Positions 339 to 48,276 of a stretch of 64,000 bases of DNA are shown here, one piece after another. Within the stretch, counting starts at the first letter, position 1, and every line of letters starts with the position of its first letter. The DNA is from Trichosphaerium sp. ATCC 40318. Lineage: Eukaryota; Protista; Tubulinea. Where the stretch lies: the NCBI GenBank assembly GCA_038496445.1, contig JALMLS010000561.1, forward strand, positions 62,001 through 126,000. The letters run 5' to 3'. Made by a program: the position numbers and the translations under genes. The notes beneath the pieces are model-generated. The model searched no databases. It was not told where the DNA came from and saw nothing but the letters and a program-made list of their open reading frames with translations.

Positions 339-693
339 AAAAAGTCTGACAGTTTCCTTCCATCCCGCACCAGCCAGAGAATGTGATTGCTACTACCATA
401 CTGTGGTCTTAGGTCTTACAGTACAAGACTACGCATATGGGTACTAATCGCGTAGAGCTTTAGAGTGGAGTAGGCTGCACGCGTGGTATGGTTCGTAACC
501 ACGCGTACAGCTGTTTTCCACAGATACAGGGAAATAAATTCCTGAGAAAAGTGAGGAAATGCATCCATTGTTCGTTTGCCTAACAAGTTTCATGAGTTTA
601 AATGCAAAAGACGACACTAAAACTGTTTGTTTCTTTTGTTTTACGACTCAGCGGGAAAATTAACGTCACAAAGGATCGGAGACTCTCACCACA
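339..693 (-). ncRNA. Candidate structured ncRNA (unknown family)
   Basis: Perfect DUSE-like ACCCACAA on the - strand at 745-752. Hairpins at 474-511, 429-455 and 413-429 gain G-U pairs only on the - strand. 5' UGUGGU can pair with ACCACA (402-407). T5 run at 339-343. No convincing ORF. Confidence 0.45.
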
Positions 694-1086
694 AGAATAT
701 ATGTTTTCCCAACTCATCAGAGTGTTTTTGATAGTAAAAAGGAGTTGTGGGTAGGGTAAAATACGTACATTTGCAAGAAGTGATGCGAGAGTAGTGAGAT
801 TGAGAAATAATGTTGATATGAGCTTAATCACGATTAAGTGCGCAAAAATCTGTTGTTTTGGTGACACATGGCGTCCGCTCACGAGGCTCTGGACCTTGTC
901 TATGTGGAAAACGTCGGTGCGAAGTGAGTGTCAAAAATCCAACATTTTCGTTTGACTAGTTTTGAAGAGAAAGCTCATTGGTATACGTAAGTAACCTTAC
1001 TGCGCGTAGATTCGCTTATTTAACGCGTTATTAGACACGCCTATCGCCAAAAACATTGTCAAAGTATCAATAGCGTCTAAAATATC

Positions 1087-3641: not shown

Positions 3642-4017
3642 TTGCCAGTGCTTTGTTGCATAGTCAACTTTGATAATGTACAAAACTGAGTAAGTATTGC
3701 AATTCTCCGAGTAATAAAACATAAATCTTGCGTCGTGTGCAGTAAATACTGCGTCTAGATAATTTGCGCTCTAGTCTAAACATAAATCACTGTTTTAGAG
3801 TGTACCATTTTCAATGTTCACTCTACCCAAAGCCAGATGTTGTTGCAAGCAATTTGTAGCATGCTGTAATTGTGCAACTCGAGGGAATTACCTTGCAATG
3901 TCTTCACTAAGATGTGGTGCTTTACAAATTCTTCAAAATTGGTGGTTGTACTGTAAGATCGGTCAAATAGAAACTGATAAACAGGAGCAAGTGGTTTTAG
4001 ATTTTTTTTTCTCTCTT

Positions 4018-4108
4018 GGTTGATCCTTCTATGATGCTTAGCTAAGATCCGATTAAACTGAATAGAACAGATACTACACTTGATCTTAGCCAAAAGGCCG
4101 AGAAGGTT
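4018..4108 (-). ncRNA. Truncated fold-back U2 variant (U2 nt ~1-58 plus self-complementary tail)
   Basis: Identical U2 5' end and promoter. Tail gatcttagctaa...agaagg pairs with ccttct...ttggctaagatc. No Sm site. Confidence 0.7.
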
Positions 4109-4631
4109 ACTTACTGGCTGCACTTGAACATGATTTATCATGCAACACATATTTTTAATTGTGGTATGATCAAAAAAAAATGTCATTGCAAACTAAAATG
4201 TACACAACAACGCATACCAAACAGCACATGTTTTTATTTAAGAAAGTTGGTTCATTAAGAAAACCACAAACTGAATGGGCCGTACAAACCATGTGGCACG
4301 AAAATATTAAGTCTTGGGCAAGCGCCATTATACAACAAATTTCAGATGCTTACAATTTAGCATTGCATTTACTTCCAAGGTAAAATGTACATGTTGTTCT
4401 AAAAGAAGTTTGTTCAACCCTAACCGTGTGGCAATAGTGGGTGGACCTTGTTTATTTCTTGAACGTACAAGGGTTTTTCTGAAAAGTGCAAAAAATAACG
4501 TGGTTTCAGTATTTGTGTAAATAAAGGGTTTGGCTTCTTAAAATGAAACAAAATTACAACGAAAACAAGCTTAGTTTATGAAAACTCTTTTGTTCTTTAT
4601 ACATTAATTACAGTTTATGCAAATATTAAAC

Positions 4632-15925: not shown

Positions 15926-17005
15926 ATATGTAATAAAAAAAGTAAACAGGTTCATAAATGTCAGTTTTTTTCTTTCCCACAGCTAATACTAATACTATTC
16001 ATGCACACCAACTAGTGCAAGCATGCTCATGCTAGTTTTTTTGGAATAATAAAGTGGTTTTACTTATTCCAAATCAAACACGTGGCGAGAAATCAGCACA
16101 AGAATACAGTCCTTACTAACACTCAAAATAATAGTGCACGGAAACATCATCCTTTTTTTGGAAAATGGCACCATAATCTTTTTGTGCTGGGTCACGTGAC
16201 ATCTTTTTGTTCGCAATAGTTGCCGATGTGGTAGTTGTACCCAATTAAAGACAATACGAACGCGAAATACATTTACATGGAATATACACAAAAATACGCC
16301 AGCCTGTCTGCCGTTAGTGAATTGGAGCATTGTGTAAGCGTTTCGAATTTCTTGAACGAATTTGAAGACAGAAGCTATTTTAACAGCCAAAATTCACTGT
16401 ACGTTATCAAAAAGGTGGATGTACGCACTCTATAACGTTTCGAACCGTTTTGGTAAAAATACGGATTAAAAAAACGTGATCTACGTTGTTTGGCTAAATC
16501 TCTACAGAAACTAATTTGGTATGCGAATTTCTTTGTTCCACGCGTCGTTCTATATGTTTCTGGTATCAAAACTCATTTTGACTGTTGTAGAAGCCTGTTC
16601 AACCTAACTTCCTACAAACGCAATTTCTTTACTTTCAGCGACATTGAAACAAAGTAAAATGGGTATTTACAACAATACCGGTTCGAAAGTAAGGTGGAAT
16701 TCGAGCGGTATCCATTTTTTTGAATTTGAGTTTAACCGTTAAATATCCAACTGAAGTAAACGCTTTCAGAGTGTCGAAGGTGTACTTCTGAGCGTTCTAG
16801 CGTGTGTAACAGTGTTTAATAAATTACTCACTTGAAAACGAACAAAATGAATTCGAAGTTGGATGTTGATAGGTGCCGTTACCTCTACTACATGTGCATT
16901 ATCATTACATTCACTACACCTCCAATATCTCGGTTCAACGTATATCAATTCAATCCAAAATCTCGAACCTCTAAACAGCACGACAAATGCTACAACTTTG
17001 TGATA

Positions 17006-17013
17006 TCCCACAA
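17006..17013 (+). promoter_or_regulatory. DUSE-like element TCCCACAA (also 47123-47130 on the - strand)
   Basis: Perfect WCCCAYAA; same ccacaatt core as the U2 promoter. Confidence 0.6.
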
Positions 17014-17064
17014 TTTATTTCGTGGATAAACTTGGAGGTACAAAAGGATTTCTGGATTCATGAG

Positions 17065-17351
17065 ATAATGGAAAGCAAAAGGAGTGTGTGTTCTCTTGGC
17101 GCTTTCTAAATAGAAAATAACGACATGATTTGAAGTTGATGAGAGAATTCAGTACCTCGAGGTATCGTACCTGATTCTCAACACAAACATCAATCTAGGA
17201 TCATGTTAGACTGAGGGAAACTGGCATGAACTGGTACAGTTCCTCGGTCTCGAGTGTCCTTTGGCCGGTGTTCCAGTGTACGCCGTTGTCAATGGAGTGG
17301 GGCGCTCTGTGGGTTATTAAGGAGAGGATGTCTGCTCGGCCCTATCTTTTT
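17065..17351 (+). ncRNA. Novel ~287-nt structured ncRNA candidate, copy A
   Basis: DUSE at -59, five consecutive hairpins, T5 end, structure-compatible differences from copy B. Confidence 0.65.
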
Positions 17352-18080
17352 GTGAAAAAAAGGATTAGAAGAAAAATATTGCCTATTATCTAAAACATTG
17401 TTGGCGTTAAATGTATTTCTTGTTCATGAGAGCCAAGGACTGCCTCTGGTGTGGTTACAGCTAATTTACTCTACAAGCGAATCAGATATTTCGGCGCGTT
17501 AGGGCAACCCACGCTTCACAACTTGTAAGCACAGAACATTTTGCTATTCGTTTGTTGGCTTGAACTGCTATGTGAAAAAAAGCTAGAGGTGCTTGTACGA
17601 AGCGACTAAAGCACAAGAATTAGTTACTCGTGATCTTTATGAGCTGGTTCATCGCGGCAGTTTGTTTTAAAGCTGAAATCAGCATTTATATTTCGCTAAA
17701 ATAATTCGACACGTGTGTTGTCGAAACGTTGTTTACCCGTAAACTAATAGTAAAATATCTTTGACTGCAGTAAAAATGCAGCGCGTAAATCGTTCTGGGT
17801 CCTCCCAAAATGTGTCGTTAGGAGTTATCCTTTTCGTACATGTAGAAAAATGCAAAACATTAAAGAATGCATAAATGGTAGCCATTGAAGCTACTCTCAA
17901 CTAATTCTAAAATTCCTAGTTTTGTCGCTAGTACATTCGCTAGTTGTATTATCACCTAGTAATAGTACTCTACTCGTCAAATATATGTTGTGATGATGGC
18001 GTGTTTCATAAAAAGAAATTATTCGGAACTATTTTTTGTGTTAAGTCTTGTGCGTGCAGTGAAAGTAAATCTCCGCTACG

Positions 18081-19086
18081 ATGACATCAGAAGGCTCTGT
18101 TTCTTCTAACTCTTTAAGAAGGCGTAAAAAATCATCAAAGGTTCACTTGAATATATATACACTCTCCCAAGCAAAGGGAATAAGCAACAAACTCTCAAAC
18201 AAATTTGGGTTTAAAAAAGCATACCACACAGCTGTAGAAGGTGCGCATCTACTCTATAAACAACTAGAACTTACACCAAATGCAGTTTATGGTATAGAAT
18301 ACAGCTACGATGAAACCAGAGGCACGTGATTTTGATAAACCCAGTACTAACATCATAAAGGCATTTATGCTGCAAAGCCCAGAGAGGTAAAAAACGCGAA
18401 ACTTAAAAAGGCATTGTATATGGGAACTGTACGTGCGCCTGTTGGTTTACCTTCTGTTTAACAAAATGTTTAGGCTAATATGAAATGGCCTGAAGTAAAG
18501 AATATAGTATCAGAATTGCGGTGCGCACCCAGTAAAGACACAAAACTTCGTTTCGTTTTTGGAGTCCAAAAAAATAAAAAACAGTTATTTCTCCATTTTT
18601 GCTCCTTCTACGCGCGTAAACCTACACGTGAATGGTCACGTGCGCGTAGGTTTTTCGTTAGTTGGTTATTCCGACATAAAATTTAAAGTTAAAAAAACTC
18701 CAACCACTTTTTTAACTCATCTACGAAGTAGTGAACAATATGATATAGACAACTACGATTTGATTACACGCAATTGTCATCATTTTTGTGAAAGTCTTTG
18801 TCAAGAATTGGTGGCTATGAGCATCCCATCTCACCTTACAAAGCATAGAAAGGCAGCACAACTTCATAAACCAATTATACCAAGAGTCTTAGCTCAATCA
18901 ACGGCACGCTCTTTAAAATAAAAAAAGCGAAAGTCGGTTAACAGTTTTTTTGTTTAGCCTCCAAAGGGTGACAATATTGAGCGTACGCTATCCACTGTAA
19001 ATATCTGGGCGAACTCCGAGCTACCTAACGAAGATTTCAAAGATTCTTACTCAGAGTCCGATGAGCTTTGTTACGAGATGTACTAG
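18081..19086 (+). CDS. DeSI/PPPDE (peptidase C97) family protein
   Basis: VHLNIY, YHTAVEVYGIEYSY (catalytic His), YDLITRNCHHF (catalytic Cys). Two GC-AG introns. Confidence 0.9.
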
Positions 19087-26159: not shown

Positions 26160-27109
26160 TTAAGATTTAGGTGGTCCCATTGCAGGTTGTCCCATTGCAG
26201 GTTGCTGTCCCATTGTTGGTTGATATGTAGGTGTAGTATAAGGCTGTTGAGGAACTTGGGCATATGGTTGAGGATTGTAAGCACCACCGTATTGAGGATA
26301 TTGAGAGTTGTTTACAGGTACTAAAAGAAAATGAATTAGTTTGAAAGAGTTAAACGTATTTTGAATAAGCACCTGTCACGTGGACTTCTCTTCTTCGCCT
26401 GTTATTCCTTCGTACTACGAGTACAACGATAACAACAATTAAAATCAAACAAGCGCATCCGCCACCAATCAGACCCAATACAATAGAAAGTACGTAATCT
26501 TGGGGAAGGTGTTATTTTTTGTAAAACTGAAATAAACTTCGGGTTTGCGAGATGTTTGCTTGTAACGTACGAATTGGGTTTGTCCACGAGCATTCAGATC
26601 TTACAAGAGCCCAATCACCATAACAATACGCGCTCGAATCGGTACAAGAAGCTGTATTTCTACAAAAAACAGAGTTTGAAAAAGTGATAAACCCAAAAGT
26701 TTAAGAAGTGCTCCTTATAAAATGTCACGTGAGGATTTTTTTGCAAACGTTGTTCTAATGGAACGTTTAAAACACGTACCTGCAGTATCCACAAAAAGTA
26801 TCCATGGCAACACACGTCTCACATCCAACAGCAGCGCTACAAGAACCTTTGGTTTAAAGTAAGCACAATACGATTATCTCGCAGTTTAGAGATGATAGAG
26901 CGGGTTTAATGAGGAGAGAGCGTACATGAGCTTACTGAGAATCCGTTATCGCAGAATATTGAAGCTTGGCATTTACCATCAACAGGACACCAACTACATG
27001 AGGGATAATTTGAAGTACAAGAAGTACAAGAATAATACTCGCTACAATCTTGTGCGAGTGTTATGTATAAAAGGGTAGCAACAACAGCAAAAATAGTCGC
27101 GTATTTCAT
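26160..27109 (-). CDS. PSI-domain membrane protein, paralogue 2
   Basis: MKYATIFAVV signal, CSWCPVDGKC, QYPQYGGAY tail with MGQxP repeats. Confidence 0.85.
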
Positions 27110-27721
27110 CACGTGTTGTAGTTATTGGTTGATTTTGTTAATTTTGAATTAGATTTGTGTTGACTGTCGCTTCAGCTTGTTTTAGAAGAGCCTCACCTAT
27201 GTTCGCTTGTAATACGGTATTAATTTCTAATTTCTTGTAGCTTTGATTATTCAACCAAACCTAAAATTTCACGAACACAAAACGTTTTTCCGACAGTTTT
27301 CTTGTTTCTTTGTCACGTTTTTAGGAATCTTGGCCTCAAGCGAAGTCGTAAAAGATGTGCCTGTACGAGGCAATCTAATATTCGTAAGTTGCCCAGTTCG
27401 TGGAAACTGTGAAGTACCAGGCAACAGGTTCGAGGTTAGAGAAACAGTAACAAGGCCAAGGAGCCATAAAATGGCATGAATTAATAGTGCTTTTTGCATG
27501 TTAACCTACTAGGCACTGGCACATCCAGGCGTAAAGAGGAGTATTTAACGTGAGATCGTTACAATCTCAAAGAAACTTACAAGCGCTCCCAAAGTATCTT
27601 GCGCTGAGTGTACGGTATTAACATAGCGTAATAATCTGTTTCAGAGTATAAGAGACAAGTGCATATGCAAACTGTTTATTACAATCAAAGTTTCTTTTAT
27701 TTGTTACTAGTGGTTTTGTTT

Positions 27722-28412
27722 TTAAGATTTCGGTGGTTGCCCCATTGTTGGTTGATATGTAGGTGTAGTATAAGGTTGCTGAGGAACTTGAGCATATGGT
27801 TGAGGATTGTAAGCACCACCATATTGAGGATATTGAGAGTTGTTTACAGGTACTAAAAGAAAATGAATTAGTTTGAAAGAGTTAAACGTATTTTGAATAA
27901 GCACCTGTCACGTGTACTTCTCTTCTTCGCCTGTTATTCCTTCACACTACAAGTACAACAATAACAACAATTAAAATCAAACAAGCGCATCCGCCACCAA
28001 TCAGACCCAATACAATAGAAAGTATGTTCTCTTGGAAAAGGTGTTGTTTTTTTCAAAGAAAGAAACTGAACAGTGGTTTGCGAAACATTCTCACTTACGA
28101 AATGGGTTTGTCCACGAGCATTCAGAGGCTACAATAGCCCATTCACGGACACAAAATTCGATCGAGTCGAACAAACCGCTATATTTCTTAAAGAGTGAAA
28201 AAAAATGAATCCGAAACGTTTAAGAAGAGGGTCGCGGTATTACATGTCACGTGGAGGTTTTTTCAAAATCGTTCTCATCTACCGTTTTAACACACGTACC
28301 TACAATACCCACAGAAAGTGTCCATGGCAACACATGTCTCACATCCGATAGCATCGGCACAAGAACCTTGGTTTATTATGAGTACGAGTACCTCGCTGTT
28401 TAATGAGGAGAG
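27722..28412 (-). pseudogene. 5'-truncated PSI-domain paralogue 3
   Basis: Tandem copy of paralogue 2 from exon 2 onward. Similarity stops inside intron 1; no signal-peptide exon found. Confidence 0.6.
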
Positions 28413-46560: not shown

Positions 46561-46784
46561 TCTTTGTATCAATAAATTGTATATTTTTTTCGAAAAAGAA
46601 AATACATAGCTTACAAGTACTAGTTACTAGCTTTTGTGTCCTTACCTTTAATCCTCAAACTTACTCTTGGAAAAAAAACTAAAGTACAATGTTGAGAATA
46701 GCCATAAGTATCAATAGACCAGTAAGAGGCCAACAGTGTTTTTTAGATAAATAGCAAAATAAAACTTCTAATCCTTTTTTTCAC

Positions 46785-47071
46785 AAAAAGATAGGGCCGA
46801 GCAGACATCCTCTCCTTAATAACCCACAGAGCACCCCACTCCATTGACAACGGCGTACACTGGAACACCGGCCAAAGGACACTCGAGACCAAGTAACTGT
46901 ACCAGTTCATGCCAGTTTCTCTCAGTCTAACATGATCCTAGATTGATGTTTGTGTTGAGAATCAGGTACGATACCTCGAGGCACTGAATTCTCTCATCAA
47001 CTTCAAATCATGTCGTTATTTTCTATTTAGAAAGCGCCAAGAGAACACACACTCCTTTTGCTTTCCATTAT
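46785..47071 (-). ncRNA. Novel ~287-nt structured ncRNA candidate, copy B
   Basis: 5 differences from copy A; DUSE and T5 retained. Confidence 0.65.
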
Positions 47072-48276
47072 CTCATGAATCCAGAAATCCTTTTGTACCT
47101 CCAAGTCTATCCACGAAATAAATTGTGGGATATCACAAAGTTGTAGCATTTGTCGTGCTGTTTAGAGGTTCGTGATTTTGGATTGAATTGCTACACGTTG
47201 AACCGAGATATTGGAGGTGTAGTGAAAGCAATGACAATGCACATGTAGTAGAGGTAACGGCACCTATCAACATCCAACTTTGGTTTCATTTTGTTCGTTT
47301 TCAAATGAGTAATTTATTAAACACGATTAGAAACGCTAAGACGCTCTAGTGTATGCCTCTAACGCTGTGAAAGCGTTTACTTCAGTTGGATATTTAACGG
47401 TTAAACTCAAATTCAAAAAAATGGATACCGCTCGAATTCCACCTTACTTTGAACCAGTATTGTTGTAATACTATCGCTTTTATTTCATGTGAAGCAAGGA
47501 AATTTAATTTGTAAGCGGTTAGGTTGAACAGGCTTCTACAACCGTAAACAGGCGTTTTGAAAAGAAAAACATTAAGAACAACGCGTGGAACAGAGAAATT
47601 CGATATAGAAAACAGTTTTTGTAGCGATAGCGAAACGATTTGTAGATCACGTTTTTTTACCGAATTTTACATCAAAACTGTTCAAAATGTTATAAATCAT
47701 ATATTTACACTGCTGATGATAACTTGCCGGTGCATTTTGGGTGATACAAACTCAAGTACGTGTAAAATCTCTTTTTGGCTCTCAAATAAGCTCAAACACT
47801 TCGTGACGCCTGAATAACACTGACGAATTGCTCCAGTTCACTTACGACAGAAGCCATTGTATTTTCACTTAATTCGACTAACGTGATTTTCTCGTGTCTT
47901 TATTGCATAGAATTACGACTGACTGATTCAAGCGTTTACAACCAACTGAGTATCAACGTATGAATGACATATTAGATTCACACGTAGTTTTTTTGTAGTT
48001 GTTACACTTCACGCTTCACGTTGATTGACAGTAACTTCACAGTTAACATCCAGTTAAATTGTTAGTATCATAGAATGAAGGATGTTGTAAAAAAAAGCAC
48101 GTGAAAGTAAAAATGCACGAGTTTTCTGTTTAGTTTTTCAATTGCTTACGTACTCTACAACAACTGTCTACCATTCAAAAATTCATCTAGTATAATACAG
48201 CGTTACTACAGTTATCAAGAAGAAGTTTAAGATGCTACAGCAGTTACAAAGAATTCGTCACCAGCTGTGTTGATGA

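Follow-up and report, generated by a model that had tools for sequence, protein, structure and literature searches.

Positions 17062-17351 of the + strand appear to hold an independently transcribed gene for a non-coding RNA of ca 290 nt. This gene would belong to an uncatalogued family, with two near-identical copies in the window (the whole 64-kb stretch of DNA analysed here) and a promoter of the snRNA type. We hold this reading with moderate confidence. A U2-type element at the U2 spacing, a strand-specific fold, a terminal T run, the near-identity of the copies and the lack of an Rfam family together make an unassigned RNA gene the best reading of the locus.

The upstream element of copy A, ATCCCACAATT (17005-17015, + strand), is USE/DUSE/PSE-like and matches ATMCCACAATT exactly, as does the upstream element of copy B (47121-47131, - strand); both copies have ATCCCACAATT upstream. 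Exact matches to this 11-mer occur only four times in the 64 kb, at 2663 and 4157 (- strand), where they precede the two U2 genes, and at 17005 and 47121 (- strand), where they precede the two copies. ATCCCACAATT differs by one base from the U2 element ATACCACAATT. The looser 8-mer MCCACAAW is found at chance frequency, so that the signal is carried by the full 11-mer. The U2 gene has 58 nt between the start of its element and +1 (2663 to 2721), and this distance would put the +1 of copy A near 17063; the first stem begins 57-64 nt after 17005. The candidate gene thus shares with the U2 of this genome, as a snRNA-type gene should, both the upstream element and the spacing from it to the predicted +1. 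The proposal of an earlier note, made from the sequence of the window, that a DUSE-like element sits at the U2 spacing is confirmed before both copies.

A candidate TATA-like box, GATAAA (17025-17030, + strand), starts 20 nt after the start of the element. The U2 gene has its GATAAA at 2691-2696, 28 nt after the start of the element and 30 nt before +1. In copy B the box is changed to GATAGA (difference at 17029, corresponding to 47107). Position 17029, inside the box, is the sole difference between the two copies from the upstream element to the predicted start. Because copy B reads GATAGA, we only infer a function for this box. At the other end, a T5 run at 17347-17351 (+ strand) is a candidate Pol III terminator. 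It follows the stems, as the earlier note had it, and is the sole run of four or more T in 17062-17351. Each copy ends in its only such run. The U2 gene has no T run at its end. In Arabidopsis, the USE-TATA spacing is 23-24 bp in Pol III genes and 32-34 bp in Pol II genes (PMC8287931). The TATA-like box placed 8 bp nearer to the element than in U2, the absence of an internal T4+ run and the oligo-T end favour Pol III. By analogy, and from two independent promoters, the candidate gene would therefore probably be transcribed by Pol III.

This organization resembles that of the Pol III type 3 genes of plants and ciliates (U6, plant U3, plant and ciliate telomerase RNA), in which a CCCACA-type external element is also combined with a TATA-like box. 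There too, the same element serves Pol II snRNA genes (here U2), the spacing from element to TATA is shorter than in a Pol II gene, and termination occurs at oligo-T. The spacing gap differs, however (8 bp here versus ~10 bp), and the candidate RNA has no telomere template, no U3 or U6 boxes and no Rfam match.

The U2 region itself contains a perfect 129-nt inverted repeat (2651-2779 / 4051-4179) that includes the U2 promoter together with ~59 nt at the start of the gene. The other U2 gene (3989-4109, - strand) is truncated or rearranged and scores 63 bits, against 151 for the first. A further candidate RNA was seen at 339-752 (- strand). It has a degenerate upstream element, TACCCACAACT, at ~752-742 and a T5 run at ~349-345 after ...CUGUCAGAC; it has no Rfam match at gathering thresholds.

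The RNA of copy A (17062-17351, + strand) would be 290 nt long, including the terminal U5, with its 5' end placed from the U2 spacing. Its minimum free energy (MFE) fold, at -97.3 kcal/mol, is composed of a terminal stem and five hairpins. In the terminal stem, GAGAUA (17062-17067) pairs with UAUCUU (17343-17348) with a mean pair probability of 0.92. A start at G17062 gives the 290-nt RNA and leaves a 3' U tail beyond this stem. Hairpin 1 (17069-17108) has an energy of -14.7 kcal/mol (z -3.59, 0 of 200 shuffles as good), against -9.2 on the minus strand. It is followed by an A-rich linker (17109-17121), single-stranded in the MFE structure, and by hairpin 2 (17122-17207), a long stem in three segments (-25.8 kcal/mol, z -3.23). 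Hairpin 3 (17208-17250) has an energy of -18.2 kcal/mol in copy A (z -3.66), and hairpin 4 (17252-17307) one of -25.2 kcal/mol (z -3.15; -10.1 on the minus strand). Hairpin 5 (17311-17342) is weak (-9.0 kcal/mol, z 0.05, 94 of 200 shuffles as good). Five stems in series had been described. Four of them stand out from shuffled sequences (z -3.15 to -3.66, 0-1 of 200 shuffles as good), and the fifth is at chance level.

For the whole RNA, the + strand folds at -93 to -97 kcal/mol (z -2.85) and the - strand at -70 kcal/mol (z -2.25). G-U pairs make up 17 of the 94 pairs, and hairpins 1, 3 and 4 are weaker by 4-15 kcal/mol when the opposite strand is folded. The 17 G-U pairs thus make the fold specific to the + strand. 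As a control, equally conserved upstream blocks are unstructured (z -0.7 to +0.7). Within these folding models, both controls, the unstructured upstream blocks and the strand asymmetry due to G-U pairs, support a fold formed at the RNA level on the + strand. No ORF longer than 64 codons is found in 17062-17351. Intermolecular pairing with U2 is no better than with shuffled sequences (198 of 300 as good).

Copy B (46785-47074, - strand) is the reverse complement of copy A in the window and was found by nhmmer with an E value of 2.4e-88. The copies differ at five positions over the 290 nt, as had been counted before: 17154, 17216, 17242, 17245 and 17303. No other difference appears when the comparison is extended to 17030-17371 (5 in 342 nt, 98.5% identity). 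The copies had been taken for a duplicated 287-nt gene. Their near-identity holds, but they do not form an isolated unit, since both lie inside an inverted segmental duplication of ~1 kb. Arm A covers 16431-17395 (+ strand) and arm B 46741-47694 (- strand). The arms are 29 kb apart, the RNA copies are at the inner end of the duplication, and no terminal inverted repeats are found at the ends of the duplicated unit (best local score 6).

Identity between the arms is uneven. It is 100% over 16686-16768, ~60% over 16769-16811 (~40% divergence) and 95% over 16812-17028 (11 differences in 217), and it falls off fast from 17372, ~20 nt past the T run. The outer flanks, which had been described as much more diverged, are not simply so: the 5' flank remains 95% identical for ~220 bp, and the collapse occurs only ~20 nt past the T run. 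Conservation of the RNA is sharper than that of its surroundings (5 differences in 342 nt versus the ~40% divergence of 16769-16811). Nevertheless, judging from the sequences, this conservation could be due to gene conversion and not to selection on the RNA, because high identity also spans the 220 bp of DNA on the promoter side.

The identical 83-nt block 16686-16768 directly adjoins the 43-nt patch 16769-16811, in which 17 substitutions and no indels have accumulated; the counterpart of 16686-16811 in arm B is 47325-47450. The structure of the block is unremarkable on either strand (z -0.7 and -0.2) and it has no Rfam match. The contrast between block and patch could reflect a conversion tract, or a functional element beside a variable segment. 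A divergent protein-coding gene upstream of the RNA was considered and rejected. The similarity ends at ~16431/47694 and lies in mixed reading frames, which leaves coding conservation unsupported there. Elsewhere in the window, three collinear pairs of direct repeats (26200-28374, 78-95% identity, ~1.5 kb spacing) indicate a tandem duplication of a ~1.5-kb segment.

A third, fragmentary copy, C3 (3533-3611, + strand), is homologous only to 17246-17330 (nhmmer E 1.8e-5, and alignment). It sits between the two inverted U2 genes; upstream it has an internal T5, and it does not end in a T run. C3 keeps the hairpin-4 module, its best conserved part. It is probably a decayed copy, a pseudogene. Within the 64-kb window, nhmmer thus finds two full copies and one fragment.

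Three of the substitutions between copies A and B had been read as turning Watson-Crick pairs into G-U. This is the case for 17245 and 17303 (G-C to G-U) and not for 17154, which is unpaired in the minimum-energy fold. The other two, 17216 and 17242, had been assigned to both partners of one pair. They are indeed partners in copy A (G-C), but in copy B they face each other as A.A, and the pair is broken rather than compensated. Every change between the copies weakens copy B, the MFE of which is -86.0 kcal/mol versus -97.3 for copy A. Hairpin 3, which holds three of the five differences, drops to -12.3 kcal/mol in copy B (z -1.92), and the z score of hairpin 4 becomes -1.6. The A/B substitutions were rejected as covariation, as no double change keeps a pair and 17216/17242 is broken. 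With so small a sample, this lack of compensatory changes between A and B is no evidence against the structure.

Contigs from public sequencing runs add a few variants: G17081A (G-U to A-U), T17104G (A-U to A.G) and two further changes in the loop of hairpin 1. An A at 17216 is also found in a contig with no other change, hence facing C at 17242 (A.C). When all sources are pooled, six of the nine variable positions are in stems, the share expected from 65% pairing, and half of these six keep the pair. As this is the chance share, it gives no evidence of covariation. A consensus fold of A, B and C3 was also discarded. It is a different and weak structure in which the three sequences show two nominal double changes, and it is uninformative because C3 looks like a pseudogene.

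Our view of expression comes from assembled contigs, not raw reads, of public runs of unstated kind. In the two best runs, from one organism, contigs cover 16907-17080, 17038-17393, 17386-17654 and 17615-18007 at a depth of 5-10. Coverage of the locus at this uniform low depth takes in the promoter and 650 nt past the T run. In the same two small runs, contigs of the neighbouring gene have a depth of 80-165 and end at 18098/18099; these contigs look like RNA. The low depth at the locus could come from genomic background, from read-through or from a long transcript at low level, and it is compatible both with the presence and with the absence of a discrete, non-polyadenylated 290-nt RNA. The neighbouring gene itself (18081-18921, + strand) encodes a PPPDE/DeSI-type peptidase and has at least one intron; in the two small runs its depth of 80-165 is ~15 times that of the RNA locus. 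A transcript from MMETSP encodes a protein 89% identical to this peptidase.

One public contig joins 17340 to 17382 and runs on to 17635. The 41 nt skipped (17341-17381), bordered by CC..TG, are not intron-like and span a T5-GTG-A7 palindrome just past the RNA. The skip may be an indel polymorphism or an artefact of reverse transcription or assembly. Runs of two labelled organisms, as well as a seawater metagenome, also contain parts of the RNA sequence, 98-100% identical and differently flanked. The public contigs include a second variant of hairpin 1 and a variant of the upstream region at 17035-17037. In run X3, from a differently labelled organism, a 155-nt contig is identical over 17171-17301. 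Its 5' part reads ...GTTCTCTTGGCGCTGT, hairpin-1 sequence with three changes, and 17106-17170 (65 nt, the 5' half of hairpin 2) is missing from it. This form could be another gene copy or a chimera. The seawater-metagenome contig has two differences over 17225-17360 and a different flank.

The absence of a recognisable family, noted from the sequence alone, agrees with the Rfam search, which gave no match for the RNA. With Rfam 15 at gathering thresholds, only the two U2 genes and two tRNAs are detected over the window. When cmscan was run at E<=10, 16900-17450 gave 0 matches and 17040-17360 gave noise only. The score of SCARNA8 there is 19.3 bits for a threshold of 53 (E 0.14), and this candidate was rejected on account of an unpaired lower stem and no 3'-terminal ACA. 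At the same E value, the locus does not match the models of 7SK, Vault, Y RNA, U3, SRP, RNase P or MRP.

Individual features of these families were also compared with the RNA. In a U3 snoRNA, box D (CUGA) would lie beside the 3' end, closed by a terminal stem with box C'; here the last CUGA, at 17211, is 140 nt from the 3' end, and the 3' end has GUCUGC. The 5' boxes of U3 (A'/A) are missing from the 5' end, which reads GAGAUAAUGG. A string UAGGAUCAU, seen at ~17195-17203 in the test for U3 boxes, is in the middle of the molecule, inside a stem. U3 snoRNA was rejected on these grounds and for want of a model match. For telomerase RNA, the longest (CCCTAA)n match is 5 nt, at 17340, where a template needs at least ~1.3 repeats (telomere repeat taken as TTAGGG), and this identity was rejected. 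For SRP RNA, known by its helix 8/S-domain motifs and Alu-domain loops, and for RNase P and MRP RNAs, known by the CR-I/CR-V sequences of the P4 helix, no model matches at E<=10. For 7SK, GAUU/GAUC is present only at the base of hairpin 2 and not in a 5'-terminal hairpin, hairpin 5, placed before the U tail as a 3' hairpin would be, is at chance level (z 0.05), and the 7SK model does not match. A Vault RNA or a SINE with a Pol III type 2 promoter was set aside, as no tRNA or Vault model matches in the region. The motif likenesses to U12, U6atac, the U3 box A string and the vault B box are short and without model support, and we take them to be chance. A dictyostelid Class I RNA was rejected too; the RNA is 290 nt long, not short, and has in common with that class only a terminal stem and the logic of the promoter.

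A 22-base pattern from the module common to A, B and C3 was used to look for orthologues in one metagenome scan, and none was found in another species. The single match belongs to unrelated sequence, resembles the RNA only within the pattern itself, and is attributed to chance. Because no orthologue from another species was obtained, an undescribed RNA class for the ~290-nt RNA is stated here as possible only.

Four other explanations were weighed. Both copies may be inactive relics, either pseudogenes or sequences converted from a master gene elsewhere, their similarity resulting from recent gene conversion. Consistent with this, copy B is weakened by every one of its differences from copy A and has a modified TATA-like box, C3 has decayed, and the occurrence of G17081A together with T17104G, the changes at 17035-17037 and the form devoid of 17106-17170 imply further copies or alleles. 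However, the element, the TATA-like box, the fold and the terminator of copy A are all intact, and four hairpins with z about -3.5 would not survive in a relic. We consider this explanation rather unlikely. It is unlikely that the RNA is a known housekeeping RNA too diverged for Rfam, such as a long vault RNA, a 7SK-like elongation regulator or another RNP RNA with a snRNA promoter. Its size, external promoter, oligo-U end and paired termini would suit Pol III RNP RNAs in general, and the GAUU/GAUC pairing at the base of hairpin 2 is faintly like the GAUC repeat bound by HEXIM (PMC8406779). Yet the models named above give no match even at E<=10, the GAUC-like motif is just 4 nt long and outside the 5'-terminal hairpin, and no A/B box or tRNA-like segment was reported.

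It may also be that Pol II makes a longer transcript here, so that the region is part of, for example, a lncRNA or an untranslated region, and the promoter and terminator motifs would be irrelevant. The contigs that span 16907-18007 at an even, low depth, with the promoter and 650 nt past the T run among the DNA covered, and the one that passes from 17340 to 17382 and continues to 17635 would be explained in this way, but low uniform depth with gaps equally fits genomic DNA background or read-through. Moreover, copy B does not share the downstream sequence although its RNA is 98% identical, both structure and conservation stop abruptly at the T run, and the 11-mer is common to U2 and at the U2 spacing. 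A longer transcript therefore seems quite unlikely to us. A SINE, a MITE or another mobile element would account for more than one copy of a compact structured unit with an oligo-T end. It is a most improbable explanation, as there are only two full copies and one fragment in 64 kb, the copies lie inside a 1-kb segmental duplication without terminal inverted repeats (best local score 6), and the promoter is external and common to U2, with no tRNA-like part found. Several observations weigh against the independent RNA gene that we favour. Contig depth is flat from the promoter through the RNA into the DNA downstream, no covariation is seen, one pair is broken in copy B, the TATA-like box of copy B is altered, and the metagenome scan gave no orthologue.

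If the locus is an independent RNA gene, an external snRNA-type promoter would drive it, with the U2 element ~58 nt before the start followed by the TATA-like box. The transcript, ~290 nt long, would begin at ~17062 and stop in the T5 run, Pol III being the more likely enzyme. The predicted fold of the RNA is a closed junction in which the 5' and 3' ends pair and leave a 3' oligo-U tail, with four robust hairpins and one weak hairpin radiating from the junction. To judge from the type of gene, its most likely mode of action would be as a protein-binding scaffold of a nuclear RNP, and the 3' U tail may be bound first by La or a La-related protein.

Some known RNAs have comparable features. In dictyostelids, a CCCACAA-type DUSE that serves Pol II as well as Pol III genes lies ~60 nt upstream of the start of Class I RNAs; these RNAs are short, have a conserved 11-nt motif, pair their ends in a short terminal stem and come from multi-copy genes (PMC7919456). 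The candidate shares the upstream element, the pairing of the 5' and 3' ends in a short stem, the downstream T run and the presence of several copies. Class I RNAs are, however, far shorter and carry the 11-nt motif, whereas the candidate RNA has 290 nt and five hairpins. The likeness seen is one of features. The organism also differs, the candidate's being marine (seawater-metagenome run; closest protein match from MMETSP). 7SK is similar in its size of ~300 nt, its snRNA-type promoter, 3' oligo-U, multi-hairpin scaffold and short GAU-rich paired segment. It differs in that neither of the Rfam 7SK models matches, a true GAUC/GAUC repeat is missing from the candidate, and the candidate's 3' hairpin folds no better than chance. 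Vault and Y RNAs are Pol III products in which paired termini leave a 3' U tail. The candidate RNA is ~3 times longer than these, with no internal A/B boxes detected and no Rfam match.

We propose only tentatively that the RNA is the first member of an undescribed family, one of abundant scaffold RNAs of the nucleus, ~290 nt long and made by Pol III from snRNA-type promoters in a marine protist lineage. It is with the same reserve that we compare the logic of such a family to that of 7SK, Y or vault RNAs, with no homology to them. In its extreme version, in which the RNA would be the functional counterpart of 7SK outside animals, the proposal is very improbable.

At present, the locus is a well-formed gene prediction; it answers no open question and is not exceptional. 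If expressed as predicted, it would add a new structured small RNA to what is known of a little-studied marine eukaryote, and would offer a handle on the snRNA-type promoters of this lineage, where one element would serve both U2 and the candidate gene with a different spacing to the TATA-like box. If true, this spacing would amount to a rule for the choice of polymerase like that of plants and ciliates.
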